The notes: generated by a model from the letters alone, not told the origin. A stretch of 64,000 nt of DNA from Amoebophrya sp. A120 (GCA_905178155.1 CAJINV010000002.1:5141709-5205708); one strand, 5' to 3'; counted from the stretch's first letter, positions 784 to 22,400 are shown. Numbers and translations: made by a program.

Positions 784-791
784 AGGCAGTA
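784..791. repeat. left target-site duplication AGGCAGTA (8 bp)
   Basis: Identical to 15652-15659; lies immediately outside the TIR. Confidence 0.93.
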
Positions 792-1172
792 TATGAATGG
801 ACAAAGTACAAAAGTTCAGTATTAACTATTGCATTTTCTGAGCCGTATTTTTCATTTTCCAAAATGCAAAAACCGATTTCGATTGTCATGAAAACAATTT
901 TTTGTCATGGAGAAAACATTTCTTTGTGATGCAAAAACTAAATTCTTGAGAACGCAGAACTGCTTTCTGAAGAGCACGGATTCTATCTGAGCCACCGACT
1001 TCACTGATCCACCGAACCAACATTCTAAACACCGAAAACCAAAATATCACCAACCGAGCAAAACAACTTCAACCGAGCAAAACAAACCTTCATTTCCGGA
1101 AAATGCGAGTTCCTCTACACCGAGCTAAAATTTCGAATAGTTGTGGTTTATTACAAAACCACAACTATTCGA
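792..1172 (+). repeat. left terminal inverted repeat (381 bp)
   Basis: Reverse complement of 15271-15651, with no mismatch seen by eye. Contains reiterated ACCGA motifs (CAACCGAGCAAAACAA x2) and TGTCATG x2. Confidence 0.96.
1133..1172 (+). other. putative tyrosine-recombinase target site, left (17-bp arms, 6-bp asymmetric spacer ATTACA)
   Basis: TCGAATAGTTGTGGTTT-ATTACA-AAACCACAACTATTCGA, which is loxP/dif-like architecture. TIR homology stops exactly at its inner edge. Confidence 0.6.
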
Positions 1173-2114
1173 TTTCTCCAACACAATTGTTCAAGTTTTC
1201 AACTTAGACATCCGAAACCGACTCGCTTTCACGAACTCACGTCGCGCAATATCGGCACGCGCGACCGTGGGACCATCTTCAAAGCTCTTCATCATTTGTT
1301 CTTGGCGAAACAGCTATCGCTTCGCCATATCGTTTTTGCCTCCAAGTCCGCAGCAGAACTCACGGCGACTTGGGAGACCATATCCATCACATGGTGGGTA
1401 GAGCGAAACATTTTCAGATATGGAAGACAATCATCTTCCATCATTTGACAGTATTGTTTTTTTGCGAAGAAACTACATTCGCGAGCGAATGCAGCTTCTT
1501 CACGAGAGGACGGTGAAGGTGTTGATACAAACGCCACGTCGAAAGACGTGACGATAAAGAAGAGTCCAGGTTGTTATTTTTCTAACAAAAAAATAAAAGA
1601 TCGAAGATTGCATTTTCATAATGTAGAAGTGCTTGTCTTTCGATGAGAAGTAGATACTGATACTCGAAAGACAAAAAAGAAATGTTACGAATATTTGCGA
1701 GTCAGCAGACGTAGATGGCAAGACATCTAAGCTGCCGACTCTAAAGAAGGCCGGTGTAGCACGAAGCATTTTCGCTTCGCTGAAATCTCAGTGATTTTTC
1801 TAATCGAAAAAGAAATTGATAATTTTTTTGAAGTAAAATAAACAAATTAGCCCCATCCGATTACGCAGGAAGGATGCGGGCTTTAATCAGACCGAATTGC
1901 GGCAGCTCGAGTGGAGTTGACGAACTCATACTGATGAATATGAAATTTATATTTCTAAAAGTAGTACTGCATGTTTGTGCATAATAACTTCCGTATCTAC
2001 AGACAAAGCCAGCACTCTATCTTCAACGAGAGGTAGAAAAAAGATTACCGACAACGAAAGTCGAAATGGAAAGTTTCTGAGCACAAATACATCTCGTACG
2101 AATTTACCTTCAGA

Positions 2115-5100
2115 TTACATATTCGTGTCTAAAAAGGTAAATTCATCCAAGGTGTTGGTCCTGCTTCGCTTCGCATTGGGCGTCTCGTCATCATCCTGCT
2201 TCGCCGACTCGATGGACAGCTCGCTCATGCCGCGGGGACGCAACAACGCCGAATGGTTCCGCAACCTCATCTGCTGCTGAAAGAGCTTCACGTTGCTCGG
2301 TCCCGACAAGTTCATGCCCATGTTGTGCGACGACGAGCTGCTGCTGCGATCGCGGGTGGACTCCTCCGCGGAAGAGGATCCGGTCTGCTGCTTGACCTGC
2401 TCGGCCACCATCTTGGGATCCAGGTAGGCCTGGCAAAGACCATCGTTGTCCCAGGCGTCGGTGTTCTTGGCATCGGTGTAGAAGTTCAGGGACGCGTCCA
2501 CGTACGAGGCCTGCAGCTTGGTCGCGGCAGCGCTCAGCGCGGCGGCCGCCTTAGCAGCAGCCGTGGTCTTCTTAGCCGGGACCTCGGCACCCTTGGCGCC
2601 CGCGGGCTTGTTCAGCGGGGCCGACAAGCGGTACTCGGCGGAGAGGGAGTTCGCAAAGGCGCGGCTCGGCTCGCACTCATACCTGATAGTTTGAGATAAT
2701 GATGAGCATGACTATGAGATCATAGACAGTACATCATAAGCTATGACTATGAAGCACTTCATTAACAACAGATGATACAGAGCATGATGATGAAGATGAT
2801 GATGAAGATGATGATGAAGATGATGATGAAGATGATCATGATGAACATCAGATGACAAAAAGCATGATGATAATAAAAATACGGAATCAAGCAGTCGAAC
2901 TTCAGGTCACCCAAGCAGAGCGTGGTCATCTCGAACTTGATTCCCTTCACCTTCTTGTCGCATTTGAAGTCCAAGGTGATGGCCTTCTCTTGCAGGATCT
3001 GGCACCGCGAGGACAGCTTCATCTTCTCCATGTGGAAGTTGATGGGCACTTTGATCGGCACGACACTCACTTTCACTAATTGTTCGGAGGAGAGCGTCCA
3101 CGTCTGTCCCTGTTTCAGCCCTTTTTTGCACTGCACGGTGTAGTGACCCATGTTCAACGAAAGGCAGTCCGCCGGGAACTGATTTTTGTTGACGAAGATT
3201 TCGTTTTGAAAACAAAGTCTTTCGCAAGTGAGTGCTCGTCTTCTAAGTCTTGCCCATTTTCCTCTTCACGCTCACGTCGCGCTCACGACTAAAAAAACAT
3301 CAGAAATAAAAGTACGTCCATCAGGGCATATTGCTGCTCCTCCACCGGTTCCTTGGCCTTGGCCCGCGACTTAGCCACGCACTTCACTTGAAACCATTTG
3401 GCCTCCTCGGCCGATTTTAACTTTTCCCCTAAGGCCTCGGTCTCCTGGTTGAAAATCTCCTTCAACTGCTTCTGCTCGAGCTCGCAGGCATCTTTGTGCT
3501 TCTTGCACTTCTCTTCGTACTCCTCCTTGGCAGCGTTGACATACACCTGGTGAATAGAACCGGAAAACTGGAGGTTGAACGAACCCGGGATGAAAAGCTG
3601 GTTATCATAGGTCACTATGAATTTCTAGGAGAACGATGTCACAGCCAAATTCCAAACAATGCTCTATACTAAACATAAATATAAATATTGCAACTGCGAT
3701 ACATTCTTGGTGTGATCAGTTAAATCCAACCGAAGCGTCCCGGGAATCACGTAGAGCTGTTTTGCGAGATAGGTACTTCTACAGACGGATCGCACGCGAT
3801 CCATCGTCGAAGTGGAAGTCGCAGCTCACACACACGCTCATGGAATGGACGCAGATACTAGTTCGAATTTAAATACTCGTTGCATTCTCGCACAAACTGA
3901 AATAAAATCATAAAAAAAACCTTGGCTTTCTTGCGGGCAATCATCTCCGCCTTCATGGCTTTCTCCATGGCCTTCAAAGTGGTCTCCAAGTTGGACTTCA
4001 GCACCTTCAGATCGGCCTGGTAGTTCGCGGCCAGCGAGTGCAGCTGGTTCTTGATCTGGCGGACCTCGGGCGACATGACTTTTCCCTGAATTTCACCACT
4101 TTTCCCATCGAGGTATCCCAGCGCTTCATCAGTGGTATCGCACTCGATGGTGATCTGTGGATTATTCATAGGTAAAGTTTTCATTTTCAAATACGAACTC
4201 GCTTACATGCATTAAAACTTGCATTAGAAATTTGATCAACATGAACATCTTGATATTTGAAGACCTCGATCCCCTCCGCAAACGTGACCGTGGAGTTCAG
4301 CGTCTTGTTGTCGGCGAACCGCACGACAAAGGTACCGACCACCTTCGCGCCGTCGAAGTACGGCTTCTGCAGGTTCGCGCAGGTGCGGATCACGTTCTCG
4401 ATCTCTTTCAGCACGGAGTCGTCCAATTTCTGCTGCTCGACCAGTTTCTTACCGAAACTGAAGTCTCCGTCGTACTCGATCCTGAGTTCCTCGGGACACT
4501 TCGCAGTCACCAACGAACCGTACACGCCATCCTTGTCCTGGGGTGAGTTTTAGTTTTAGTTTAAGTGAGAGAATACTACTGGTTCGTGCGATTTGCTTTA
4601 TCTGAAAAGTTAGGACGTGACTGGAGGTAGTGCTACTGCAAGGAGAAGTTAGTATGCACTGAAATAAATCAAAATCTGAAATACGGTCCAGACAGCGCCC
4701 TGAATCTCCGGCTCCACGAATAAATCATCCTCCTCGTCGTCGGACAGCAACCCGGCATTCTTTAACATCTTTCCTTTCGGCTTCTTTTTGTTCTTGTCCA
4801 GCTTGGTCTTCCCCTTCATGGCATTTCTGCACATTTCGCTCACCAACCACACGAGGTACTGGTTGCGCACGCTATCCGATTTCTCGTCTTTCAGCCAATT
4901 CTGGCGCATCATCTGCTTGATCTCCTTCATCTGCTTCTTGTTCAAGGACACCGCGTCCGGTCCGAGCAGGAGGTGCATGAAGGTGTCCAAGATCATGTCG
5001 GTCAACGCGGGGCGGAGGTAGCGCAGTTGCAACTCGAACAGGCGGGTCCTGATGTCACAATAGATATTGATACAGATGCTGATACTGTTACTCGCAATCG

Positions 5101-7853
5101 CATTACAAAGCGAATTCGAAGTCGAGCTCGAGGCGTTCTGCTTTTACATTCACATCGAAACACACAAGACTAGTAGAATTGTCGAGTGAGAGAAAGACGA
5201 AAGCAAAACACTTGCTCGCTGCTGTTGCAGCAAGCTCGTGTGCGCAGCCGTCATCTTCAATACTTATTTCTACGTCCCCGTCTTGCTTCAGCGACAGCGT
5301 CAGCGATGCGATTGCAATGCAAAAATTCCAATTCCACTCACAGGCACATACTCAGGCAGGAGCTGCCGCTACGTCTACATCTCGAAATAGATTCTCACCA
5401 TACTGTTTACGTCGCAGCTTATTTTTGTCTTAGATATCCGCGTCACACTCACTGTCACTGCACACAGACATCAGGACGTTGTGTAGAAAAGTAGATGTAG
5501 AAGTAGTAGTAGACCACACCAACACTAACAGACTAGTAATAAAGAAAAAGCGTACTTCAGCAGCGTAGTGAACTTGCTGTCATCCTTGGAGGAACTCAGG
5601 CGCCTGATGGTCTGCAACCAGTTGGTCTGACTGCACCCGAACTCACGCCGGGCTTGGTTGATGATGTTGATCTCGCCCATACCACTGATTCCTTCGCACT
5701 GGCTCTGGTATTGTTTTGTGATTTTGTTTTCAATTTGAGTTTCATTTTCGCGAGAAATCCTGAACCATAAGATCGGATGCGAGCATCAGTTTCTATTTCA
5801 AAAATTCGCACGATCTGCTCCGCAAACCATGGCGCAACATAAAAGTAAGTACCTCGTAAAAAGCCAGCTCGTTGACTTTTTTTCCCGGGTTGTTTTTCTT
5901 GTAGGCTTTCAGTTCCGCCTCGATCTGTAATATAGTTGTGTTCATCATCATCTTCATTATCATTTTCATTATTACATCGACTTTTTCGAATCGTGAATAC
6001 CTCAGAAGCGGCAGCTACGACCTTCGCATCACATATCTCCGCAGCGATGAAGGGGAAAAAAATCGCAGGCAAGAAACAGAAGTCCGCCCTGAAGCCGAAC
6101 TTCAAAAAGACGCTGAAAAAGAAGGCAGTCGCAGCGCAGAAGGCTGTCTTGGGAAAGAAGAAACAGAAGACCATCGCAAAGCCAAGCGCCCGCAAAACGC
6201 CGAAGCGTTTGGATGTTTTTGATAGCGAAGAGCGCTCCGGGTCGCTCACGATGGGAGACTGTCTGCGGTTCGGCGACGCATTGGAAGCATCAACCGGCCG
6301 CAAGAAGGAAGCGGGCAAATTTTATAAACTCGCGTGGATTGTGGCATGCCTGACTGGCCGGCGCGGCATGGACGTAAGGCTATTGCAGCGCGGCGAATTA
6401 ACTTTGAATACCGTCCGCATCGGGAATTCAAAACTGGCGACCACAAAAGGGGGCCGGGGCAAAATCAAGAATGTGCCCATCGACCCGAGCAAAAAAACAA
6501 AGGACTTTTTGCAGGAGATGATGGACCACATGGATGACAACGGGGTCGAAAAAGATGGCCCGAATTTCAACTTTCAGAAAGAGTCATTCGAGAAGAAAAT
6601 CCGGGAAGTCCGCAAAGTCTTCGTGTGCAAAGACAAAAAATCATCCCCGCCAAGCATAATAACCTCACACACGCCGCGCAGGAGTGTGTGCTCGCACTTG
6701 TTTGCGAAGAAGGTGTCGCTCCGCACGATTATGTCAATAACTGGACACGCCAGTGTAGACACACTGCACAGATACATCCAGGGGGATTTCACATTTCAAA
6801 GACTAGCTGCAAGTAAATTAGGCGTGTGATACGATGCAGATTTTATCATGAAATCAAAAAAAACGATGAAGCTGTAGATCGACCTTGGAATGTGAAACAA
6901 AAAATTACTATACGTCGGCAAACACGGATTCGTACTTTTCGCAGAAAGTACATTTCAGCTGTCCTTGGCTCGACTCGTTGTCGAGTCTCACGAAGAGACG
7001 TAATAATTCTGGTTGCCGGTCTTGGAGAATACTCGAAAACACGAACATTCTGTAGTGTTGTATGAAGAAATAGAAATTAGAAATAGAAAATCACAAAGAT
7101 ACGTATCACCGGAGTGCTTCATAAACAACACCGCATGAAGCGCGATGAACCTTCCAGAGCTGATTGAGAGTTTCCTTCGGAACTAACTGAGAGTTGCTGG
7201 CTGCTGCAGCTACGTGGGCATTTGATACGAAACACTTCGAGCTCAAGTGGAGTTTATGTGTGTTTCATCTCTGGTCTATTCATCGGATAAACGAGAGCCG
7301 CGAATAGAGCGACTTCCTTTTTCATAAGTCAAAATTATGGCTAAGTACCTGAATCCTAAGGCCTCCCATCCCTTCGGGTCCTCCTTCAAGAATTCCTTGC
7401 CGGCTTGGAAGGAATGGTTAAGGGCGATTATTTCGAGGAACTTGTCGATGGATACGACGTAGCACAGTCTCCTCATCTGGTAGGATCCGTTCCTCATGCA
7501 GTCCAGTAAATATTGTTTATGCTTCTCATTTCGGATCATGTTCCACTTCGACTGCTTGAACTGCGGGACCAGCTCCTTCGGGATTTTCGTGCCCTGGACG
7601 AACTTGTCGTCGCGGTACCGCTTGATGAACTCGCACATGGCGGCCTTGGTCACCTGATGTTTTTTCATGTGATTATGAGAATCATGGTGCACGAGAAACA
7701 TATATAAACCACAAAACTCAACGAGGATATGCATCGACAAAAACATTGGGATGACACATCTGAAATCAAACAAATTCAGGCAAAACAGCGACGCAATACC
7801 TCGCCCTTGCGCCAGGCGCGCTTCATCTGCTCCGCCTCCAAGTCCGTCGGCAT
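2115..7853 (-). CDS. transposon cargo gene, multi-exon orphan protein (~780 aa) with coiled-coil and basic segments
   Basis: Approximate exons 7853-7800, 7654-7349, (possible micro-exon ~5604-5575), 5049-4685, 4538-~4265, ~4155-3921, 3547-3315, 3178-2883, 2683-2115. They are joined by GT-AG introns whose phases agree with the ORF track pieces. Confidence 0.72.
2784..2845. repeat. (ATGATGATGAAG)n microsatellite in an intron of the cargo gene
   Basis: Seen directly in the sequence. Confidence 0.85.
6047..6829 (+). CDS. tyrosine recombinase (phage integrase/Xer/Cre catalytic fold) with a Lys-rich N-terminal tail, intronless, 260 aa
   Basis: Full catalytic set in order: R (LTGRRGMDV), K (SKLATTK), H-x-x-R (SHTPRRS), H (ITGHAS), Y (TLHRYI). 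First ATG at 6047. Confidence 0.9.
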   Translation: MKGKKIAGKKQKSALKPNFKKTLKKKAVAAQKAVLGKKKQKTIAKPSARKTPKRLDVFDSEERSGSLTMGDCLRFGDALEASTGRKKEAGKFYKLAWIVACLTGRRGMDVRLLQRGELTLNTVRIGNSKLATTKGGRGKIKNVPIDPSKKTKDFLQEMMDHMDDNGVEKDGPNFNFQKESFEKKIREVRKVFVCKDKKSSPPSIITSHTPRRSVCSHLFAKKVSLRTIMSITGHASVDTLHRYIQGDFTFQRLAASKLGV

Positions 7854-8211
7854 GGTCTCCGTAATTTGGAGACTTTGCCCCGACGCGAGGAGCTCGATTT
7901 CCATTGTGAAAGAGATGCGTGACTAACAAATACGACAGAACCCTGCTCAGAAGCTGTGTTTTTTCATTGAAATGCGATGGAGTTGTGAGTTATTCCATGT
8001 TATTTTTATCACAAAGAGCGAGTTTTTGCATGTATCACGCAGACATTTTGCACGCGTCACGCAGACAATTTGGAGACATCATGATGGGATTTGCAAGAGC
8101 TCATTTCATTGGTGGAGCGCAAAATTTTGTGAACGTGTGATGTGCGAGAGGACGATCTTTTTTGATCCAGAACGCTCAAATAATAGAAATTCACCTTGTC
8201 CTAAAAAGGTC

Positions 8212-8346
8212 GGATTTTAGTAAATTACTAGAAATCCTTGATTTTCAAGATTTTTTTACAAAAAAAATGAGGATTTGAGCTGAAATCCTGGAAAAATGCA
8301 AAAATATTTTTGAAAATCAAGGATTTCTAGTAATTTACTAAAATCC
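8212..8346. repeat. 37-bp perfect inverted repeat with 61-bp spacer, between the transposase 3' end and the cargo gene start
   Basis: GGATTTTAGTAAATTACTAGAAATCCTTGATTTTCAA (8212-8248) and its reverse complement (8310-8346); imperfect extension TCCTAAAA/TTTTAGGA. Confidence 0.9.
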
Positions 8347-9083
8347 CACGATTTTAGGAAATGGGATTTTCACAATAAATGTCGGATATTTCATCGTTTG
8401 GGAACTGGAGGTTTCTGTGTCGGGGTGGTGAAAAATCTTGTTCGGGAAGATCAGAGCATGCCAAAATTTCTCTGGTTTATCTCTCCTCGCAACTGTGAGT
8501 GGAGTGATCGGGACCTCTTAATAAGACTCAGCTACAAGGTGGGTAGGCTGCTGGGTCGGGGAATCAAAAGCACTTTGCGCATCATCTCGAACTCAATTTA
8601 CATCCTTTTTCCTATCGGAGAGCGGGTATAATTTGCATTCAAACTCAGGGGAAGGAGGCAGCTTTCATATGAGGTCTGGGTGCTTATGTTGCGAAAAGAT
8701 CTTGGACCGAAGACGCGAGTTCCATTCTGGCAAGCTATCGCGCCACATCTACATCACTTACAACCGACAATGAATCAAGTGGCTCAGCATCATTTCCCGC
8801 ACGTTCTGAATCTGTGCGTCGTTGGTATTTGCTGCGAAGTTTCGCGTGATATTTAATGCTTCCGATCGTGAAGAATTTCATTTTTTATAATAAAAAATAC
8901 AAGTTTTCATAATTGAATTATAATTCAAATTCAATTTCAATTCGAAACAATTTTGTGTTTTTTCAAAAAAAAAACATATAAGTCTTTCAGAGACGAACAT
9001 GCTCGGCTCGTGACATCTACGTGTACACTGCGTCTGCGAATTTGTAAACAACAACTCGCAGGCGGCAGGCCCAGATGGTAGTC

Positions 9084-12000
9084 TCAGCCACGGATCGGCA
9101 TGTCGCCCAATACAGATTGATCGCTGTCGTCGGAATCCTCAACCAACTTCTCAATCTTCTTCGACTTGGTGGAGGCGATGTAGTGCGCGATCTCCCGGTA
9201 CGCAGCATCCTCCAAGTCGTCACTGACCAAGTTGTTGCTCGGCCGCTGAATCTTCAGGATATCGCACACCTTCGCGACGCAGCGCTTGCGGGCAGCGGCA
9301 ACACTAATCTTGTCGGTCATGCGACCCGCGGTGGTGCAGCCCACTCCCGTAGGTTCAAAGTCTTCATCACCAACATCAGCGGCCAGCTCGTGGACAACTC
9401 CTCTCCAGGTCGCCTGTTCGGGGCGAAATATGAAGTACACCGTGTCGGGCTGGAGCTCCGGAATCAACTGCTTCTCCGGCACCTTCGGATTATTTTTGCA
9501 AAATTGAAATCGGCATGAAGGTGTCAGTCTCTCTTCATATCTTGGTCATAATCTTCATCATCAATCAAACACACTAAAGTCGAAATGAAGTCATGACCGA
9601 AAAATCAAAAAGTAAAAATAGTACAGCAACGTGAACTTGGATCGTCCGGTGCCACGACTCTTCGCGAGACTCTCTCTCGTACGGATCCACAACAACGTGC
9701 TTCTTCTTTTCGGCCTCCGGGTCCCACTCCTTGGACGTGTCGAAGAACACTCCAGACCGCTGCATTCTCTTCTCCAACCAAAACCCCTTGTCGACGAAGA
9801 GCCAGATCCTGCCCAAAATAAAGTGCGCGCGGGCGACTTTTGCGATGGAGGCGTTGAGGAAAGAACTGGTGCTGAGCTTCTTGTTGTCCTCCGCGGATCT
9901 CGAAGCCCAGTGGGACACGGTCATCACCGAGCTCACCTCCTCGTTCAAGAGGAAGCAGTCGTACTTGTCGGCTTTGTCCATCAAGTCCTTCGGAATCTCT
10001 TGCAAGCCGATGGCTGAGGAATTCTTCTTCCTAGTCTTAAACAGGCCCAGGTAGAAACTGGCCGGGAAATCAGAATCGTTGACGAGGTATTTGGTCGTTT
10101 TTGGCTGCGGCTTCGTACAGCACCCCGGAATGTCCCCTTTTTTCATCGGGACGTACGTCGCGCGCTGCATGTGGCCTCGATTACCCGTGCGAGAGAAGCA
10201 GAAATAAGGTGGTCCATCCATGCGATGGGCGACCTTTTTGACGTGGATGTTGCCAAGCTTCACAAAGGAGTTGTCGAACAATTTGGTCCCAACTCCGCCG
10301 TACCACTGGCGGAAAAACGGCGTGTTCGGAATGTGCATGCGGATGGCGTCCGGAATGGTAAGGGCAACCTGAGTGTAGAGTTTCGCTGTAATTCGTTTAT
10401 CAGTGCGCACAGCTACAGTACCAAGCGAGTATTGAACTTGAACTTGAAGAGCACACAACTACAGAATGCAAACGCACTAGTTTCACGGAGTTGCACATTG
10501 GTATTTGAAGCGACATGAAAAAAAAAATACCTTCTGCGGAATCAGAGGACAGTAGTCGGCCACGTTCAAGTCATTGCGCACACTGGTCTTTCGTTTCCGA
10601 AACTCTGCCTTCGCGGCGATCAGGTACGGGTGGTGCTGGAGAGAATCGAAGGGGTGGTTCATCACAACCCTGACATCGCACGAGTTCTGCACCATCGCCT
10701 TCGAATGTCGGGGATCGAAAAGACACTTCCACTGCTCGAGGAGTTTCTGGTACTCCAAAAACGAGATGGGCTCACTCCGCGCGATGGAGGTGCGGATAGC
10801 AGCCCTTTCCTGCCGCATGTTTGGGCACAGTCTTTTGAACTCCATCGTTGTACTGTGAAGCGATTCGACGTACTGCATGCAGGGACTGCTCAGGACGAAG
10901 ATGGGTCCGGCCAGGCTGAACAGCTTATCCGTCATCGTTCCCTTTTCCTGCATCTCCGTCAAGTCCTTTTTCAGTTGTTCAATGAAATAAATCAAAAACG
11001 GATCAAGGGCGTCGTGCTCCAAATCGAGCAGCAGCTCGGCACACCGTTTCTTCGTATCGTTGCAGAAGAGCTTGTTCAAGATGTACGGGAAGATGTACAG
11101 CTGCACTTCCCGATAAACCGTTTTGCAGAAAAACGAGTGCTATCCTGTGCAAAAATATCGCACTAGTTCTACTTCTACTTCTAGATCTAATATAAATAGC
11201 ATGACAAATTTTCTCAGCACGAGAAATCGAATTTGTAATGCGGATTTGGTTGAGGTTGAGCTTGAAGTTGAAGTTGAAGCTGAGCTTGGAGCTGAGCTTC
11301 GCGCTCACCTGGCAAAGGTGATCGTCAAGGTGAACGTGAAACAGGAGACTTGTGATGCATGGTTACGAGTAGGAGTACTACGAGTGCGATATTTTTGCAG
11401 AGGATAAATATGCCATGGTCAGCGCATTCATATCAGAAGGCGCTCTCAGGAGGAGCTGGTGAAACAGCCGCTTGATGGTGTCCAAGGGGGTCGGCGCGCA
11501 CCGGTTTGGGACCATCTCCTCAAACTTCGCGTCGGAGAAGGCGATCTTCGGGTCGCGGATGGTCCGCGCATGCGAATGCTGCAGCTTTTCCAAAACGGCC
11601 TCAGCGCTGGTGACCTGCTTCCAAAAGTCTTCGTCGCCGGCAGCAGCCTTTGCCTTTGCGAAGATGGCCTTAGTTTCTTTCTTTCGATCCTTTTCCGACA
11701 TGCCCGCAATACCGTTCTGGATTGCAAGCTTATTCTCCTTCAACGCGGCGAGAGTCGGGTGCGCAGTCATCCAGCGGTGCTCCATGTGCTGCGGAATCTT
11801 GATGTCATCAAACCACAGCTTGGTCGCCTGTTGGATCTTGGAAACACCTGAAAGTGAAGTTTTTTTATGAAATAGAAAAAGGAATGCAACAATAGACGCA
11901 GCTTGACTTGAGCGTCGAAATTATACACGAACATCCTTATTCTCGTACTCAGTAATGAGCAAAAAAACAAAAGCACCAACATATCACTATCATCTTCATC

Positions 12001-14381
12001 GCAATTTATTTTCATACTATAACTACCTTCTTTGAATCCGTTTTTCTGGAAGTCCGCGATGTCCATGATGTCCTTGGCCAAGATGTGCAGTTGATGGGCC
12101 TGACACACGTATTGCAAAATAAACGTCTGCAGAAGGCGGTGTCCACCGGGATTATCCTTGGTCTGTTTGATCCTCTCTAAGTTACACGCATGTGAGTAGA
12201 GGCGCAGTCGTCGGTAGGCCTTCAGGATGTTGCTCCCGGCGTCGGAATGGCAAAGCCAAAAACACAGGGGGTCACCGGGATGATACTTCGTCGTTGCGCC
12301 CGGAAGCGGCGCGAGGTTACCGATGATGGCGTATATGGCGGAAAGCACGTTGTCTGCATCAGATCCGCCTCGTACCCCTTTCGGCGTGTACTGCCGCAGC
12401 CGGACCTTGCCGGGAGTCCCGATCACTCCAAACTCCGCCGTAGCAATGACAAATTCGAGCTGAAAGAAGCCTTCGGTGTCAAAAGTCGTACCGTCAGGTC
12501 CGAGTCGAAAAAAAACCACCTTGCGCGGGGTCGGAGGAGTAATAGACAAACTCAGCTGCTCCTTACGCTTCGCCTGGTCCACGTGAAATAGGAGCACGTC
12601 CTTGCCGCCGTCCTTGATGTTGAAGTCCTTGCCCTTGGCAATCATGTCCCAGCACGCCGTGTTACCTGCGTGAAAGAACGTTAAAGTTTTCAAATGTTCC
12701 ATTTTACCGCGCACGTGGATGACAGTCACTTTTTTAAAATTTTCATCATCACCTCTTGCAATTTTTTTCATCATCGCCTATCGCTCAGCTCCGTATCAGT
12801 TGCAGTCAGTTGCAGTAGCAGTTGCAGTCAGTTGCAGTAGCAGTTGCAGTAGCAGTTGCAGTTCGAATTCCTATTACTAGATTTAAAAAACCAAAAAAAT
12901 TTGTACCGCATATATCGTCGATTTCGTTTCTCATGCCCATTTCGAGCGCGCGGTCATAAGCATCTTCTTTGCGCAGCGCGTACTTCGTGAAGGCGGCGTC
13001 GTCTGCTTTACGCTTTTTCTCCGCGTCCGCTTGCTCAGAAACCACCTCAGCAATTCCTTTGTTGTTCTGCAGCACGCAACCGTGCTCACCTTCCTTCTTA
13101 TCCTTCGACGAGTCCGTGTGCTGCAACCGCGACAAGGCGGAAGACACAAGCTTTGCGTCAAACAGCTGCTGCAAAAACTCGACCTTTTTCCGCGCAGTGA
13201 CGGGAGAACGGCCAATCACGAAACCGACGTACTCGACCTGTTCGTCAGGCGTGAGAGTGGCAAAATACGACCACTCCACGGCGTCTCTCCACTCTTCCTC
13301 CACGAAAGCAGGGCGCTTGTACTTTTTATCGTTGAAGGTGAAGGTCAAGTCCTCGTCTTTCGTTTTTACTTCACCCTCTTCGACCATGACATGGATGGAA
13401 ATCCGGTATCTGATCAAAATTGTTTTTGTTTTTCCTTGATGTTGATGTTGATAATTGTTGCTATTGATTATGAGTGTCATTGTGTATGCGTTTATTTTGA
13501 TCTCGAGGTACAGGCATTCTCACATGCGTCGAGTAAAAGTTTAATCTTGCAACCAAATCTAAATTTCGACCGACCTAGTCTCGAGCTCCTCGATGACAAA
13601 CTCCTGGAGCCGCTTGGTGCGCTGGTACTTGTCGGCCATGACGTCGGCGCGCGCGTTTTTCTCCACCTTCTCCTCCTCGGTATCCATGTCATCGATCAAA
13701 ATGTCGCTTTTCTTGAAAAGACCCTTCTCTTCGTGCGCCGTCTTGCAATACCTGAAAAAAAGTTTTTCATTGTCGTGATGATATTTCTGTTTCAAAAACA
13801 ACAGCCGCACATGTTGACTGAAAATAGAAATTGAAATAGTATGTCTTGCATGATGAACAAAGTCTGCACTACTTCGAATGGTAGACAAAAGAGCACGTCG
13901 AGTTTAAGTAACAATATATGTACTGGCTCCACTTCTTCCGAATTTGTTCCACCGTGGGCACGGGGATCGGCAAGTACTGGGGTCGCAGAAACTCCGCCTC
14001 GTCGCGCGCAAGTTCGGCAAAAACTGTCGCGCCCTCCTTGAGCACGTCGTGCACATGTTCGAATGTGCTGCAAGACCGCACCATATCGAGGATGGGGTAC
14101 TCCAATTCGTCGCGTTTGTAGCAAGTAGTCCCGGCGACCAAGTGCTTGCACTCTTGCGCGGCAAAAATTTCTTTGTTATTTTTGCGCTTCTTGTCCGGTG
14201 GCGGCATCCGGTGCATGCCCTCAATCAAACGTTGCACATGCTCCGAGGATCTCATGTTCTCGTCCTCTATCGTGTGCTCCAACGCCTTGAGGAGCAGGTC
14301 GGCCGGCAGCGAAGGCTGCGCCGACGAAGAGTTAGAGTTCCACATCTTTTTATAATTCTTCATTTTCTCGTCAAAATCCAT
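9084..14381 (-). CDS. hAT-superfamily-like DDE transposase, about 9 exons, ~1,300 aa
   Basis: Approximate exons 14381-13924, 13752-13575, 13408-12907, 12666-12027, 11848-~11413, ~11345-11309, ~11144-10531, 10369-9638, 9483-9084; most junctions are GT-AG with matching phase. Motifs in hAT order: D1 (RLGPDGTT), D2 (HSDAGSNILKA), CxxH (CQAHQLHILAKD), RW (EHRWMT), catalytic E (LSSPCMQYVESLHS, cf. the PxSxxxxERxFS motif). Confidence 0.85.
12796..12862. repeat. (CAGTTG/CAGTAG)n hexamer microsatellite in a transposase intron
   Basis: Seen directly in the sequence. Confidence 0.85.
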
Positions 14382-14425
14382 TTTATTTTTATAAACTTCT
14401 CCCTAGAAAAAGATTTTTTTTTTCC

Positions 14426-14493
14426 AACTGATGCGAAGGGTAAGACAAGCATCAAAAGCAACTGATGCGAAGGGTAAGACAAGCATCAAAAGC
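14426..14493. repeat. perfect 34-bp tandem duplication just upstream of the transposase ATG
   Basis: AACTGATGCGAAGGGTAAGACAAGCATCAAAAGC x2. Confidence 0.9.
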
Positions 14494-15270
14494 AAATGAA
14501 TCGAAAAGGAAAACCAAAAGCAAAACGACAACTTCCAGCCAGATGATCCTCTTCATGCTTTGATCAATCCATCACGACAGATCTTGGAGCTTTGATCGAG
14601 ATCACTTCGTGTTTGGATCCAGGAACAAAATCATCAAAACCGTTGTCATCCATCTTGCGCGAAAAACGAAACCGTCATCATCTATCTTGCGCAAACTAAC
14701 GCGACGAAAACAAGAGCAGGAGAGTCGAACAAGCTTTCTTCTGCATGAGATCTTTTCTGTTTCGCGCCCCAGACTCTGCGCATCTACTTAGTTTTCTCCT
14801 GTGCGTTTTGCTTTTACTTTCTGCTTCTCATTCTATTTATATTTTCTACTTCTACTTCTGCTTTCTCTTCTACTTTCTACTTCTCCTCCCCGAAACTCAT
14901 GCTCGACATAGCAGCGTCGTGGCCGCTCCTGCTGTGGCTATCCCCTTGGTTGGGTCGCTCCTGATATTGTTGTTTTTTTCTCATTAACATTGACATTCTC
15001 TTTATACGCGAAAGACATCATCGGAGGCGCATATGTAAAATCTCAAACTCAAAGTCAAAACCAAAAGCCAAAAGCATTGCAACTCTGAAAATGCGGACGA
15101 CTCAAACGCTCCGCTATCATAATGATCAGCTCAATGAAACAACAAAAACATAACCTGCTTTCCCCTTCTAGTTCTCTGCCATTCGTGTGCTTCGCCTTTC
15201 GCTTTTCACTTCCAGCCTGCTATAACTGAAACGCATTTCCACAAACCCGCCATAGCTGAAGCCGCATAGT

Positions 15271-15310
15271 TCGAATAGTTGTGGTTTTGTAATAAACCAC
15301 AACTATTCGA
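15271..15310 (-). other. putative tyrosine-recombinase target site, right (spacer TGTAAT, inverted relative to the left site)
   Basis: TCGAATAGTTGTGGTTT-TGTAAT-AAACCACAACTATTCGA. Confidence 0.6.
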
Positions 15311-15651
15311 AATTTTAGCTCGGTGTAGAGGAACTCGCATTTTCCGGAAATGAAGGTTTGTTTTGCTCGGTTGAAGTTGTTTTGCTCGGTTGGTGATATT
15401 TTGGTTTTCGGTGTTTAGAATGTTGGTTCGGTGGATCAGTGAAGTCGGTGGCTCAGATAGAATCCGTGCTCTTCAGAAAGCAGTTCTGCGTTCTCAAGAA
15501 TTTAGTTTTTGCATCACAAAGAAATGTTTTCTCCATGACAAAAAATTGTTTTCATGACAATCGAAATCGGTTTTTGCATTTTGGAAAATGAAAAATACGG
15601 CTCAGAAAATGCAATAGTTAATACTGAACTTTTGTACTTTGTCCATTCATA
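15271..15651 (-). repeat. right terminal inverted repeat (381 bp)
   Basis: Reverse complement of 792-1172. Confidence 0.96.
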
Positions 15652-15659
15652 AGGCAGTA
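15652..15659. repeat. right target-site duplication AGGCAGTA
   Basis: Identical to 784-791. Confidence 0.93.
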
Positions 15660-16486: not shown

Positions 16487-19400
16487 ATGGCTGGTTACCT
16501 ACTGCGTGGGAGCAGCTGCGCGGAGGCGGATCAGCGAAGAATGCGTCCTTCTTTCCGACATTGGATGATTTTGTGCTGTGTCCGGGGCGGCCTGGATCTG
16601 ATTGGCACGCAGATGGAATCTACCGGTGTGGCGACCGTGCGTGTTCTTGCCGCGCAGAGCAGCACGAGGAAGTCGATGAATTCTCCTGCGTCGACTATGT
16701 TGACCCGGGATCAGCAACAAGGGGAGCCTAAAAATCCTTCGGCTGAAAAAGAAAAAGTTGGAGAGGCGCTGAAGACGGAACAAGAGCAGAACCGACTCCC
16801 GCAAGCAGTGCCGGGTTCATCGCGAGATGATTTGCATCACGGTGGTTCTGGTACCCGCAACGGGCCGTCTCAACATTCGCCCTCTGCCTCCGTCTTGCAA
16901 ACCACAAAGAACAAAATGAATCCTGATGCTGGAGCAGGAAAAGGCGAAGCCGGGTCCTTGGGCCCCCACTCTGTGCAGCAACGGGTTGAAAAGAAAAACC
17001 TTAATCTTGTTCTTCCCGAAAAGCCAACCTCCTCGCTGGCAAAACGCACGGAAAGCAAGTCAAGATCGGAGTTTGGGGAGAATGTTTCGTCTGCAGCGGT
17101 GCCTGCTCAAGAAAACAAACTGGTGCAAGTGCGACAACTACCTTCTTCGACCTCGTCGTTTCTCGGTAAGCAAGACAACTGTTGTGGTGCTCCGGAAGAT
17201 AAAGGTGAAAGAGACCGCTGGGCCGCGCGTCAGCAGATGAACAACGCCGGGGGAGGAGTTCCCGCAGCGCAAGAGTCACGTTCTGTGCCAACAAGTCCCA
17301 ACGCTCGTATTCCTCCGGATAGCATCAACATGCTGGACGGCGGTGGTGGCGTTGCCCCCAGAAAGGTGGTTCCGCCACCGCCACCACGGACTCGGGTTGC
17401 GAGTACACAAGGTGGTGACGATCCTACTGCCCGAGGAGGCGGAGTGTCGACTGACGATCCGCGAGACGCCGGTGGCCCTGGCGGGAACCTCCGCGGGACT
17501 CTGCCTGTTGACGATCCGTACGTGGGAGCAGGGGCTGGACCGCAAGTGCCGCGCCCGCGCCCGAAAGTGGCTGCGAAGTGGCCCGCGCGGCTAGGAGTGC
17601 GTCGCCGGGACGCCGCGAGGGGTACGGGAGGCGACCCCGCCCACAGTAGCATCGGGGCTCATCACCAACGGTCAGAGCTACCCGACGGCCCGGGACACGA
17701 CACAAGCACTCTGATGGACCAGGAAACGCCGGCGGGGCCCGGCAGCGCGGAGCACAAGACAAAACGTGACGGCGGGGGCTTCAACATCCCCGGGGTCCCA
17801 AAGATCGGGCTTCCTACGGGTCTCCCTCGCCTCGCGGTCTCTGGCCGAAAATCTCCCGCACCCGTCCCACCCGAGACCGGCGCGTCAGCTCATGATGCCA
17901 TGGAAGCACCAGACATTGTGGATGAGAAGCTGGTTCTGCCGGACGAGGCGGCTTTCGCCCCTCGGCCGGTCGACGGGCTGCCCACGGAGGAGGTGCCGGA
18001 AACTATGGTGCAGGAGCTGGGGCATGCGGAAGCAAAGGCAGACGGAGACGTGGGATTGAAAGACGTGCTTTTAACATTCCAGCCTCCGCGTGGAGGTGGA
18101 GGGTGGGCGTCCACCGCGTACCGGATGGCACGTGGGCGCCAGCGGCCAACCGAAAACGTGGTGGATTTGGTTCCAGTTGAGCCCGACCGTGTTCCTCGTT
18201 TATTACCTGCTCCGTTGGAATATCCAGATCCAAAGGAAGAGGAACCCAAAACAATCGAGGGCGAAGCTTTGCTGCCTATCCACCTCCAGCATGCTTCGTC
18301 GCCCTTGCCTAAGAGCATCCTCGATAGTCAGCTGCTGCAATCTTTTGAAAACAGGGTTACATCCTCGGCCGCGGCGTTGAAGCTGTACCAAATAACCTTC
18401 GGTGGCAGTGGTCGTGCTCAAGGGGGCACTGGTCAGACCGTTGGTGGTTTGCATCTCGAAGGGTGGATTGAAGACGACGAGGACTTGGGCAGCGATTTCC
18501 AAGGCCGCATTGTAGAGCAGAAAGAGATATTGAATCTGAAACTGCCCGGCGATCATGAAAACCAAAAAATCTCTGGGCCTTTCATGGTCAAGATCGAGTA
18601 TGCCAAAAAGGGCACGACTGGAGACCAAGAAGGCGGGCTGATTAAGAGCCGCTGGTTCAAAGTCGTTGGCTACGATGGAGGCGTGCGCACGGATTCCGAA
18701 GCTTGGAAGGTGGTGGGGAGAGATTACAAGGTTTGGAAGTTATTACGAGACGAAGCACAAAGCCGTTGCCATTCTTCAGCGACGCCCAAAGCGGTTTCGC
18801 AGGACACGTGGGAGGAGATGAGTAGCGGATACCGGCGCTATCGAAGCGACCACGGGAAGGAGGCTGTTGTTGCGCATTATATCATTACTCAGCTCGCAGC
18901 TACGACGTCATGGCGCCACGCTTTTCTTGTCGCTGCACCCACGGTGGATGCGACCCAAGTGAGGCTAAGAGATGACGGGCGCGGGACCAAGACGAGGTGC
19001 AGTTATCAGGGCAAGTCAGAAGGTGGCGTTCAAAGCCCGGCGCGTGAGTTTGTTATCGACATGCCACTCAGCGACATCCGCAAAGATGTCGGGGGGGATA
19101 TGGTGGCGACTGAAGATGGAGGACACCACCTCGACGCGAAAATTGTGGGCCAATATCAACTTGACCTCGCCTCTGATGACGGGGGCGCACAGCCTTTTGT
19201 GTACAATCTGGAGGCAGCGATCGACGACGAGGATTTTTTGAGTGAAAAACATGTTCGACAAGAAGTCCGCGTCTTAGAGGTCACCTCCAGAAGTGACCCT
19301 GATAAAAAACCAGAGCAAGGGTCTGCTACGGACCCGTTCTGGGTCAAGATCGAGATGAAGTACACTGGCGGACGCTTCAACTCGTCATTTCGAAAGAACA

Positions 19401-22400
19401 CCAAGAAAAACACGTGGTTCAAGGTAGTTGGCGCGTTTCATAATAATAAGCGGGGCGATTCCCAAGGGACCTTTTGGAGATTGTATGTGTCTGTGCTTCA
19501 TGCGTTCAGTAACGTCAGGCCGCACCAGCGCTATGTTTTATTCGCCGGGCAACTTATTGCTGCGGCAGCCCCGCCTCTTCCCCGGTCTGTGTTGTTGCCC
19601 TGTGGCCACTGCCTGGGCTACATTATTCGCGTGTATGTTCGCATTGACATTAGGTAGTACGTCAATGGCGGGTGCTGGGCTTTGGTGAGGTCTCCGTAGC
19701 TGGAACCTGCTCAGTGCATATCCGCGGTTCTCCGAGCGACGACGACGTGCAGCGGAAGGCAGCAAGCCTCGTCAGGCGCACGCTGTGGACCAATTTACGC
19801 AAGGCGTGTCGGCGGCACCTTTTAGCACATTGCAGGCGAGTCAGTCGTGCTGCTTGAAATAAGTGCCATCCGTTTATTAAGTTTCTTTTCATCGTTGCGA
19901 TTTTTGTCGTGCGCCTCTCGCCAGCTGCCCGTCAGTGACTAGCTGTCTTCCAGCAGCGCTTATTTGCATGATCTTGTTGCTGTGGGTCGGCGTCAAGCTA
20001 TAACAAACTCGGATGCATGTAGTAGCCTGCATTCCTCCCTGGCTGAGAAAAAGAAGAAGAGCTGCCCACCTGCAGCCTTTGCTGGGTGCAGTCGAGGTGC
20101 GGATTTTCATTTTTACATGTCTATCTGGACTTTTAGGCGCTCCGCCCACGCACTTCCATATGCAGCAGACCAGATCGCGACGAGGTCGGTCCAAAACCCA
20201 AAGAAGGCGAAGTGGTACAATATGGAATTTGTAGGACTTGGGATTAGCCACCAAGACAAGAAGATGCATGTGGAGGCGGACAAGGTGAAGCGCATTGCGA
20301 GCGCGGCAGACGGAGCGATGGCCGGGACCGGGAGTGGCAGCGCCGGTGAAGCGGGACACGCGGAGCGCCCTGCGAGCGCGCCAGCACTGGCAGGAGGCGC
20401 GGGTGAGGCCATGCCTACACAGCCGACGAAAGAAGAAGCTGTCGAAAAGATGCGCGAAGGCGAAGTGGATAAGAAATATGTACTCGCACAACATGGTACG
20501 CTGACTGCCGAAGACGATGCCTCCTCCAAACAGGCGACGTTTAGCTACAACAAAGCCGCAGCGCAAGAAGCTGGGCAACCACAAAAAACTAAAACTCTGC
20601 CTCTTGACTTTAACGTGCCGATACGTGACTTTGTCGCCACTGCTTCGACAAGTGTCAGAATGACGAAACTGTACCAAATAAAGTTCTCACCCGAAATAGG
20701 AAAGCAGTTTGAGCGGGTCCACGGCCTCAACTTGGAGGGGTGGATTGACCGCGAGGATGCGGAGATCCCAGCGCGTATCCTGGAGGTCAAGCGCGCGCGG
20801 GAAGAGCCCAGTGAAGTGCCTGGAGTTGGTGGCGAGATGAAGGACCACTTTCTGGTGCAGATCGAGTTCGGAAGGCCGGCAGACGGGCAGACGCACGCAT
20901 CTTTGTTCGAGGTCGTTGGACTTTTTGGGCGGCCAAATGGAAAGAGGAGTCCGCCTGTTGGCCCCGATCCATTAGGATCGTGGAACGAGTATGAGAATTT
21001 TCTCCATTGGCTTGGCGGAGCCACGCTTTGCGAGGGTTCACTTTGCGATGCCTCTTTCGATTGATCCGAACGGCGGAGAGGCTTTGCCGCTGAACAACCA
21101 AATCAATGGGCTCCTTCATCTAGGATTTAAATGTCTGTTTGCTGTGCCTGCAGGTCGCCGCTGCTTGCCTCAAAGAAGGGCGCGCGCGTTTTGTATTTGT
21201 AGGCATAAAAAAAAGAGCGGCTGGCGCAGAAGGGCAGCTGCGCCAAAGAAGTGTGGCATCGCCTCGGCAGACAAGCAAGTGAAACCCTCGCAAGGAATGG
21301 TCGTAGCGTTCACCACCAGATTTTCTATTCTATATTCGCGGCTTACATGATGATGATCATGATTTGCTCTTCAAGATCGCAGAAGCAGTTGCGCAGGAAG
21401 AAGCTGCGCAGGAACACAAAAGCGCACCCTCGTACATAAATTACGGCTTCCTCAATGATCACGACGGTGCAACGTATCTGGAACACGAGGTGTATTACTA
21501 CCGCGTAGAACTAGAAGCCGAGGAGAAGGACGGCAAGGAGGCGGTGGCGCCGCGCAGTGTCTTGGCCAGACAGGTAAGTACTTTTTACTTAGCTAAAGGT
21601 GATGCATTTACCTGGAGCACATAATTAATGGCTCGTTTTTGCAAGTGTCATTTCTCCTGACATGCTTGTAGGGGGATTGATAAGAAAACTAGTAGGGCCT
21701 ACTAGTTTGCTAAACAATATATAAGGTCCATTATAGCCGACTCGGAAAAGAAGTAAGGTTTTGAAGCCTTAACCTAAAGTTCTGCGACCTGGACTGACGC
21801 CTTCACTGAAGTTAAACCCTAACTGAAGGCTTCAAAGCCTTAGCTTCTGGCATCTTAGCCGAGTCTTGTCCTTAATAGTCTGAGGCCTAGCTTACTAGTT
21901 CGTTTCTTCATCGTCTTCATCATTTAAAGGCAAATCTCATCCAATGCCCGCGTCAGCAAGACCGAAAGTACAAAGACGTACGCACTTTTTTGTTTTTTGT
22001 TCAGGGTCGTGGCGGCCGCCTTCAGCACAAGAAGAAGGTGCTTGACACTCCGGCTCCGCAGGTAGTCCCGGCGGAAGATGTTACTTTTGGTCCCCGGACA
22101 ATCGGTTCAACTTCAAGTACGCCGCTGGAAACTACCTTTGAATACGAGGCAGATATTCACATAGGGACGGAAGAGGTGAGTTTAACAAGTGTCCCCCCTT
22201 CAGCTGCCAATGGGAGGAAGCTAACCCTGGGTTTTTCGCACAAGGGACAGCCCGGTGTTGTGCTGGACTTCGTCCCTGACCTGCCGGAAGGACCAACAAC
22301 GATTGAGGGTGAAGCTCTGCAATTTGGAGGCCCGCTGCTGCCGCCGGAAGGAGGGACAGTTCCGGCCGCGGCGGTGAAGCTGTACCGAATAAGCCTGGCG

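Follow-up and report, generated by a model that had tools for sequence, protein, structure and literature searches.

Hermes-fold DNA transposons of Amoebophrya carry a co-inherited tyrosine recombinase and candidate recombinase sites at the inner edges of their terminal inverted repeats

Eukaryotic transposons that combine a DDE transposase with a tyrosine recombinase have been described: Tec1 and Tec2 of Euplotes encode both enzymes, and in MarCry-1_FO of Fusarium oxysporum a mariner element is fused with a Crypton (PMC3212892). Here we analyze a transposon of Amoebophrya sp. A120, located near one end of a 64,000-nucleotide stretch of DNA (GCA_905178155.1, CAJINV010000002.1:5141709-5205708; the whole stretch is referred to below as the window), that carries a Hermes-like DDE transposase, a tyrosine recombinase, and a pair of palindromic, lox-like sequences. 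An earlier description of the window made from its DNA alone (hereafter the sequence-only reading) had recognized a hAT-like transposon with a recombinase and lox-like sites, and knew of no described eukaryotic element with that combination; the pairing of a DDE enzyme with a recombinase as such has precedents in Tec1/Tec2 and MarCry-1_FO (PMC3212892). Searches of the open literature returned no description of the Amoebophrya family, nor of a Hermes-fold enzyme together with lox-like sites and flip signatures. The combination of a hAT-like enzyme, defined lox-like sites, and flip signatures appears to be undescribed.

Tec1 and Tec2 of the ciliate Euplotes crassus resemble the Amoebophrya element in being alveolate DNA transposons with long terminal inverted repeats (TIRs) that encode a DDE enzyme and a recombinase (PMC3212892). 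The Amoebophrya element differs in the Hermes fold of its transposase, in target site duplications (TSDs) of 8 bp that have no fixed sequence, and in size, with a length of 13–17 kb. Tec elements are ~5 kb long and have an IS630/Tc1-mariner-type DDE enzyme that uses TA targets. To our knowledge, the literature defines no site for the Tec recombinase, whereas the candidate recombinase sites of the Amoebophrya element are defined to 40 bp. MarCry-1_FO is likewise a DDE transposon with a Crypton-type recombinase that is mobilized by its DDE enzyme and has TIRs and TSDs (PMC3212892). However, it is a mariner-type element with TA TSDs that was analyzed as four near-identical copies in one species, whereas the Amoebophrya family is old and diversified, with dedicated candidate sites. 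Cryptons themselves use the recombinase as their only transposition enzyme, have no TIRs, and have short direct repeats at their ends (PMC3212892). The Amoebophrya element departs from this definition by its DDE enzyme, its long TIRs, and its 8-bp TSDs.

TIRs of typical hAT elements are ~10–25 bp long. Compared with Hermes, Ac, hobo, and Tol2, the Amoebophrya family has far longer repeats (hereafter arms) of 318–542 bp, with tips, TATGAA(Y)GGACAAA, that depart from the usual hAT terminal consensus; it also has a long extra C-terminal domain in the transposase, a linked recombinase, and two to three further genes, and it has no hAT Pfam domain. The features it shares with hAT elements are the 8-bp TSD, a Hermes-like fold, and the CxxH and RW motifs. 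In the FLP/FRT system of the yeast 2-micron plasmid, recombination at inverted sites within long inverted repeats flips the unique DNA. The Amoebophrya element is similar in that it combines a eukaryotic recombinase with two inverted sites inside long identical inverted repeats. However, 2-micron is a plasmid equipped for replication and partition, whereas the Amoebophrya copies are chromosomal insertions with TSDs; moreover, their sites lie at the inner edge of the repeat, and their recombinase consists of a catalytic domain only, for which the closest enzymes found are Xer, Int, and Cre. Phage Mu encodes MuA and an invertible G segment, 3 kb of DNA that is flipped by the serine recombinase Gin, and Tn4430 encodes TnpA together with the tyrosine recombinase TnpI, which has a single resolution site. 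Both are DDE elements that also carry a site-specific recombinase for internal sites, a likeness of arrangement to the Amoebophrya element; unlike the Amoebophrya element, both are prokaryotic.

The copy in the window is 14.9 kb long (positions 784–15,659, including the TSDs; Table 1). Copies are labelled here by the contig of the 115.5-Mb A120 genome on which they lie, and the window copy is C2. Direct inspection of its ends agrees with the sequence-only reading on three points: the two 381-bp TIRs are perfectly complementary, the same 8-bp TSD occurs on both flanks, and a 17-6-17 palindrome terminates exactly at the inner edge of each TIR. In C14, as in the window copy, the two repeats match each other at 100%. 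We reconstructed the empty site and found that no host open reading frame (ORF) spans the insertion point; therefore, the insertion is intergenic, and insertion into a host ORF was rejected. The element is a real, recently mobile transposon.

We identified at least 11 elements of this family in the genome. The complete ones are 13.0–16.9 kb long, and all have both the recombinase and the transposase gene, even though identity between their proteins is as low as 30–60%. Whole-genome searches found 13 loci with the recombinase as query and 10 with a single transposase exon. At 10 loci the two genes are convergent and lie 5–7 kb apart, and identity across these paired loci ranges from 93% down to ~41% for the recombinase and ~30% for the transposase. 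A family hidden Markov model (HMM) recovered the transposase in an eleventh element, C12c. The only recombinase loci that have no transposase are C1, which is internally deleted (6.2 kb), and C15b, which is cut by the end of its contig. Arms could be defined in 11 elements 6.2–16.9 kb in length, and the arm lengths and tip sequence given above apply across this set. Perfect 8-bp TSDs, unrelated to one another in sequence, flank 10 of the 11 elements for which both ends were found; the flanks of the remaining element, C16, match at 5 of 8 positions.

In trees built from the recombinase and from the first transposase exon, every supported clade was common to both. The pairing extends to Amoebophrya sp. 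AT5.2, in which recombinase gene models g1758 and g2071 are two gene numbers away from transposase models g1760 and g2073, with linkage judged from the numbering of the gene models. AT5.2 was the only named organism among the database relatives of the two proteins. Because all complete elements and AT5.2 carry the pair, and because the trees agree, we conclude from these comparisons that the recombinase is an old, co-inherited component of the element and not a nested guest. Two outcomes that the sequence-only reading had set against its own proposal, sister copies without the recombinase and palindromes that are not conserved, did not occur: every complete sister has both genes, and the palindromes are conserved, with both half-sites changing together.

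C2 and C16 are 88–93% identical over the whole element, and their alignment showed no break in identity at the palindromes and no sign of cargo exchange between these two. The ratio of nonsynonymous to synonymous substitution rates (dN/dS) for this pair is 0.5–0.6, which is weakly informative; in comparisons between subfamilies, dS is at saturation. In its left third, C16 has ~2.2 kb of DNA (L020:3576-5805) beyond that of the window copy. It also has a TGA within a transposase exon in addition to its imperfect TSD, and is an older, decaying copy.

The recombinase ORF matches PF00589 (Phage_integrase) with a score of 34.7 bits against a cut-off of 27.1 (E-value 2e-8), and its database homologues also carry PF00589. 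An alignment of 14 family members shows no variation at R142/R143 (in LTGRRG), K166, H245 and R248 (in SHTPRR), and Y280; H271 is found in 13 of the 14, with an R in the decayed C16 copy. The intact R-K-HxxR-H-Y recombinase described in the sequence-only reading is thus borne out by a domain match above cut-off and by retention of the catalytic residues. Box II can be aligned to that of the integron integrase IntI4, an XerC-like enzyme, and XerA. In an AlphaFold (AF2) model, residues 100–297 form the catalytic domain, with a predicted local distance difference test (pLDDT) score above 85, and residues 1–99 form a basic, lysine-rich, disordered tail. Foldseek matched the model to the catalytic domains of HP1 Int, XerH, XerA, and Cre with a probability of 1.0. 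As modelled, the recombinase is a minimal enzyme that has the catalytic domain only, and it is predicted to be active. It evolves ~3-fold more slowly than the transposase.

The transposase of the window copy is distributed over five frames on the minus strand (12777-9087), which together cover positions 71–942 of the family profile and contain the motifs PD(G/A)T, SDAG, CxxH, HRW, and ESLHS. Across 23 sequences, the C and H of CxxH are near-invariant, and HRW and the D, D, and E residues are conserved. We infer that the breaks between the five pieces are introns. The spliced D-D-CxxH-RW-E transposase of the sequence-only reading is therefore recovered in its motifs, with the splicing of five pieces a presumption. 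All transposase searches used single pieces or intact paralogues as queries rather than one joined, spliced protein. No Pfam hAT match was found for the window pieces or four long paralogues at an E-value limit of 1, or for 13 AT5.2 homologues at a limit of 0.01, and hAT domains that are detectable by sequence, such as the PF05699 dimerization domain, were found in none of the 17 homologues or the window pieces. Searched against the PDB as a sequence profile, the transposase had no match, and among 1.84 billion representative proteins a profile search returned only 33 relatives. We looked up 17 of these, and all are from Amoebophrya AT5.2 except two records (from Logan and JGI/IMG), one of which clusters with an AT5.2 protein and an MMETSP transcript.

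Structure prediction placed the transposase among known enzymes. We used the 23-sequence alignment to model the core of the C14 paralogue, which is intact, with AF2; the model had a pLDDT of 82.6 and a predicted template modelling (pTM) score of 0.77. Its strands and helices are ordered as in an RNase-H-like fold with a helical domain after it. The DDE core is interrupted by a large all-helical insertion, as in Hermes. When the model was compared with the PDB using Foldseek, the top 11 matches were all Hermes transposase, to which the sequence identity is ~10%. The structural comparison that accompanied the sequence-only reading as a proposed check thus led to Hermes for the transposase and, as described above, to Int, Xer, and Cre enzymes for the recombinase. 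The transposase also carries a conserved C-terminal domain of ~300 amino acids and of unassigned fold, for which the ESM Atlas gave no usable match. Based on the Hermes-like fold and the 8-bp TSD, we conclude that the fold and motifs of the enzyme are hAT-like, whereas its sequence, its domain content, and the length of the TIRs set it apart from the current hAT families. Hence, the earlier assignment to hAT is supported by the fold, the motifs, and the TSD, and is at odds with the missing hAT Pfam domains and the long TIRs. The genome paper listed putative transposases in strain A25 only and none in A120 (PMC7789003). We count at least 11 transposase loci in A120 from the family described here alone, some of them with open frames of 934–1093 amino acids. 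The family transposases were probably overlooked in A120 for want of a matching Pfam model.

We next consider the palindromes. The pattern AGTTGTGGYT-(4–10 nt)-ARCCACAACT occurs 15 times in the genome, every time at the inner arm edge of a family element, and the reversed control pattern does not occur in the same 115.5 Mb. Half-site changes are symmetric and affect both sites of an element: AGTTGTGG is replaced by CTTGTGG in C15a and C13, and by GGTTACGG in C12c. Symmetric co-change of half-sites is the behaviour that would be expected of a binding site for a dimeric protein. The spacer is ATTACA in C2, C16, and C1; C9 and C15b have an ATTACA-type core with altered flanking bases, and other elements have AAAGCA (C14), ACAGCA (C10), ACCGTA (C12a), or AGAGGA (C12b). 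The spacers are asymmetric, and therefore the sites are directional; within each element the paired sites are inverted. A telomere-resolvase (hairpin) model was excluded on the grounds that the spacers are not palindromic. Tyrosine recombinases act at core sites of two inverted arms around a 6–8-bp spacer, and the geometry of the Amoebophrya palindromes, with inverted arms of 13–17 bp around an asymmetric 6-bp spacer, is that of loxP, FRT, and dif.

Elements with diverged arms (C9, C10, C12b, and C15a) reveal which parts of an arm are kept alike. In these elements, the outer ~50 bp are close to 100% identical between the arms, the innermost 50-bp window is 90–100% identical, and the next window is 100% identical, with the conserved inner block extending to ~150 bp in C9; identity drops to 40–75% in the linker. 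Comparison across subfamilies gives a similar picture, with conservation of the tip and the inner block but not of the middle of the arm. With a conserved tip and inner block separated by a variable linker, the long TIR therefore comprises two cis modules plus a spacer. Between C2 and C16, 88 arm differences are mirrored in both arms, as compared to six that are specific to one arm (window 792–1172 versus L020:1033-1415). In the C2/C16 lineage, the arms have evolved in concert, one arm being copied onto the other; this is not the case in C15a or C10. C9 (L022:1350-1387), C15b (L039:1284-1321), and C10 (L026:1511-1547) have a second palindrome, the start of which is 33 bp farther out than that of the main site, and which recurs in the mirror positions; no second palindrome is found at the corresponding position of the window copy. 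The second palindrome of C9/C15b and C10 may be an accessory binding site.

The genome also contains pairs of termini that share just a 17–55-bp tip with the family. Three pairs that have TATGAACGGACAAAATA are ~4.4 kb apart (C2:4599045-4603497, C3:1770129-1774524, and C6:1969719-1974171), one pair is 2.1 kb apart (C29:144377-146487), and two pairs that have ~55 bp of the C15a tip are 1.9 kb apart (C4:2560158-2562074 and C2:1973747-1975663). These pairs, which are known from search coordinates alone, gave no recombinase, transposase, or palindrome matches. They are probably non-autonomous relatives, and the existence of relatives with the tip alone suggests that the tip is sufficient for the transposase.

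Two comparisons between sister copies provide signatures of flipping. C9 and C15b are 98.8% identical over 8.7 kb, and the two arms of C9 differ from each other at ~50 positions. At all ~50 of these diagnostic positions, the left arm of C15b has the variant of the C9 right arm, to which it is 99.75% identical; nevertheless, what follows this right-type arm is the left interior. The point of the switch falls somewhere from arm column 268 to the inner edge, and the palindrome is within this interval. The right end of C15b is missing, and no second arm of the a type was found in the assembly. The second comparison involves C15a, the arms of which are only 73% alike apart from a shared tip of 67 bp and a shared inner block of 81 bp. 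A 748-bp miniature copy (C1:3950818-3951565, mapped from search coordinates) contains both C15a-type arms at 100% identity, each with its palindrome, around ~114 bp. Its left arm extends for 14 bp into the inverted sequence that adjoins the right arm in the C15a interior, giving a perfect match of 60 bp, and has no continuation into the left interior of C15a. The core of the miniature copy includes ~100 bp of unassigned origin and adjoins the right arm exactly at the inner edge. Both sets of junctions fit the outcome expected if crossing-over had occurred at the palindromes. The inversion of the core that the sequence-only reading had proposed, by analogy with FLP/FRT, thus finds flipped junctions in two comparisons of sister copies, which fit the proposal and fall short of proof.

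Taken together, we think it probable, though well short of certain, that the transposase moves the element by its tips and that the recombinase, acting on the two inverted sites, flips the ~14-kb core. The element would be an autonomous cut-and-paste DNA transposon belonging to an old, two-enzyme Amoebophrya family. The divergent Hermes-fold DDE transposase would recognize tips of ~50–100 bp and insert the element with an 8-bp duplication, the chemistry being that suggested by its fold. The compact Cre/Xer-type recombinase would bind as a dimer at the 17-6-17 site on the inner edge of each arm. Since the sites are inverted and do not differ in their asymmetric 6-bp spacer, strand exchange between them would flip the ~14-kb core relative to the arms. 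Copies that share a spacer could also exchange DNA. In subfamilies with differing arms, the flip could serve as a switch; in copies with identical arms, such as the window copy, it would be neutral in sequence. We infer both that the palindrome is bound by the recombinase and that the flips are made by it.

A bolder version of this proposal is that these are the first invertible-core transposons of eukaryotes, with the recombinase as a genetic switch. Flipping would then toggle the set of expressed genes where the arms differ, or relative to host transcription that runs in one direction, and the family would hold at least six mutually orthogonal pairs of a ~200-residue recombinase and a 40-bp site that already work in eukaryotic chromatin. 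The recombinase is the only gene on its strand, with the transposase and the other element genes on the opposite strand. We put this version forward as a tentative and rather doubtful extension.

Several observations weigh against flipping of the core by the recombinase. No recombination product has been observed directly, the DNA contigs being too short to span a 381-bp repeat, and the junctions seen in the sister copies could also result from gene conversion, template switching, or homologous recombination in the 81–139 bp common to the two arms. In C15b, which has no right end, an inversion is indistinguishable from conversion of the arm. The recombinase and the transposase co-diverge, such that covariation of the sites cannot assign the palindrome to either protein, and the recombinase has no structured N-terminal DNA-binding domain. 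Lastly, the transposase of the window copy is broken into five frames, with introns presumed.

These observations leave room for other roles of the recombinase and of the palindrome. One is that the recombinase is a resolvase, as in Tn3 and Tn4430, for joint molecules that arise in transposition or replication, such as cointegrate-like forms, sister-chromatid or dimer forms, or excised circles, with inversion a harmless by-product. A resolvase role has been assumed for the recombinase of Tec1/Tec2, which is also paired with a DDE enzyme (PMC3212892). With inversion being sequence-neutral in copies with identical arms, like the window copy, selection for inversion is hard to see. The pairing has a bacterial parallel in Tn4430, with its DDE transposase and TnpI. 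However, resolution needs one site per element, and every element here keeps two, inverted and positioned exactly at the arm edges; Hermes-type enzymes are generally known to cut and paste without cointegrates, and the fold here is Hermes-like; and no signature of joint molecules was found. We therefore regard a resolvase as an unlikely explanation for the pair of sites.

A second alternative is that the palindrome is a binding site for a different element protein, perhaps the transposase with its C-terminal domain, that homologous recombination or repair within the inner part common to the arms produced the arm swaps, and that the recombinase acts elsewhere or in another way. All element proteins co-diverge, so covariation is silent on this point; the conserved ~300-amino-acid domain of the transposase offers a binding partner of unassigned fold, the recombinase has no structured N-terminal domain of its own, and extra palindromes lie beside the main one in C9/C15b and C10. 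Nonetheless, the combination of two inverted arms with an asymmetric 6-bp spacer is the well-known geometry of loxP, FRT, and dif, and no alternative candidate recombinase site is conserved in the family. Moreover, the non-autonomous relatives share only a ~55-bp tip and gave no palindrome match, an indication that the transposase needs no more than the tip. Binding of the palindrome by a protein other than the recombinase is thus improbable in our view. Finally, a private nested insertion of the recombinase gene, for example as a Crypton, with the palindromes as chance features, is almost certainly wrong and was rejected, since the pair occurs in all complete members and in a second Amoebophrya species, the trees are congruent, and the palindrome is found genome-wide only in family elements.

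The family defines a deep branch of Hermes-like transposases that is invisible to Pfam, and it indicates that long TIRs can comprise two separate functional modules. It would also be the first eukaryotic DDE transposon whose partner tyrosine recombinase has an identifiable, if candidate, target site, such that the role of such recombinases, a question since Tec1/Tec2, becomes open to direct tests. An active recombinase would make the family a source of several small, natural recombinase/site pairs with different spacers, for use as genome-engineering tools beside Cre/lox and FLP/FRT.

Table 1. Features of the element in the window, in order of position. Strand is given as + or -, and a point marks features without strand.
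Feature	Position	Strand	Basis or remark
Left TSD, 8 bp, AGGCAGTA	784..791	.	read directly; same as 15652-15659
Left TIR arm: tip (~first 100 nt, starts TATGAATGGACAAA), variable linker, inner palindrome module	792..1172	+	381 nt, 100% complementary to 15271-15651
Left 17-6-17 palindrome, spacer ATTACA at 1150-1155; candidate recombinase site	1133..1172	.	ends exactly at inner TIR edge
Gene C, left-hand coding blocks, patchy conservation in sister elements	2115..5933	-	tblastx/tblastn patches to C9, C14, C10
Tyrosine recombinase ORF, first ATG 6047	5936..6829	+	PF00589 match
Gene B, small conserved coding block, motif 7468-7644	7279..7929	-	tblastn to C14, C10, C9, C15b
Foldback, 64-nt arms 88% complementary, 43 nt apart; like a miniature inverted-repeat transposable element (MITE)	8194..8364	.	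between gene B and transposase 3' end
Transposase piece 5; profile 822-942, conserved C-terminal domain	9087..9545	-	hmmsearch, family profile
Transposase piece 4; profile 579-822	9577..10458	-	hmmsearch, family profile
Transposase piece 3; profile 402-577; catalytic E in VESLHS	10486..11139	-	hmmsearch, family profile
266-bp element, 39-nt TIRs, between transposase pieces 2 and 3	11141..11406	.	inverted-repeat pair; common to C16
Transposase piece 2; profile 240-392; HRW motif	11381..11920	-	hmmsearch, family profile
Transposase piece 1; profile 71-242; first D (GPDGT), second D (SDAGS), CxxH (CQAH)	11770..12777	-	hmmsearch, family profile; motifs
Probable N-terminal transposase exons, two ORFs; conserved motif 13172-13303	12809..14381	-	tblastn of C14 upstream ORF
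Right 17-6-17 palindrome, spacer TGTAAT, inverted relative to left	15271..15310	.	ends exactly at inner TIR edge
Right TIR arm	15271..15651	-	381 nt, 100% complementary to left arm
Right TSD, 8 bp, AGGCAGTA	15652..15659	.	read directly

The remaining genes of the element, which we call gene B and gene C, are less well defined. A Pfam search over all element ORFs and 17 transposase homologues matched PF00589 only; the probable N-terminal exons of the transposase, where a hAT enzyme would have a BED-type zinc finger, likewise gave no match. Gene C had no Pfam match, and the C15a ORF that we took as its counterpart had no match in the ESM Atlas. For gene B, there is also a match to the C-terminal end of one gene model of AT5.2. 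The conserved motif in the probable N-terminal exons of the transposase is also found inside a single ORF of 1093 amino acids in C15a.

The 266-bp insert occupies the sole large DNA gap in the protein-to-DNA alignment of the transposase. DNA contigs cover it at 3–7 times the depth of its neighbours, with loose ends that point to other contexts. By contig depth, the insert is a multi-copy repeat, and it is probably an introner-type intron. Introner-type introns are known in the host organism (PMC7789003, PMC12130899).

Directly to the right of the element, an ORF of 1056 amino acids lies on the plus strand at 16487-19657 of the window. Cumulative GC skew climbs steadily across most of the window from ~16 kb onward, which suggests that the host genes near the element run in one direction. 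The recombinase is co-directional with the neighbouring host genes, and the remaining genes of the element are antisense to them.

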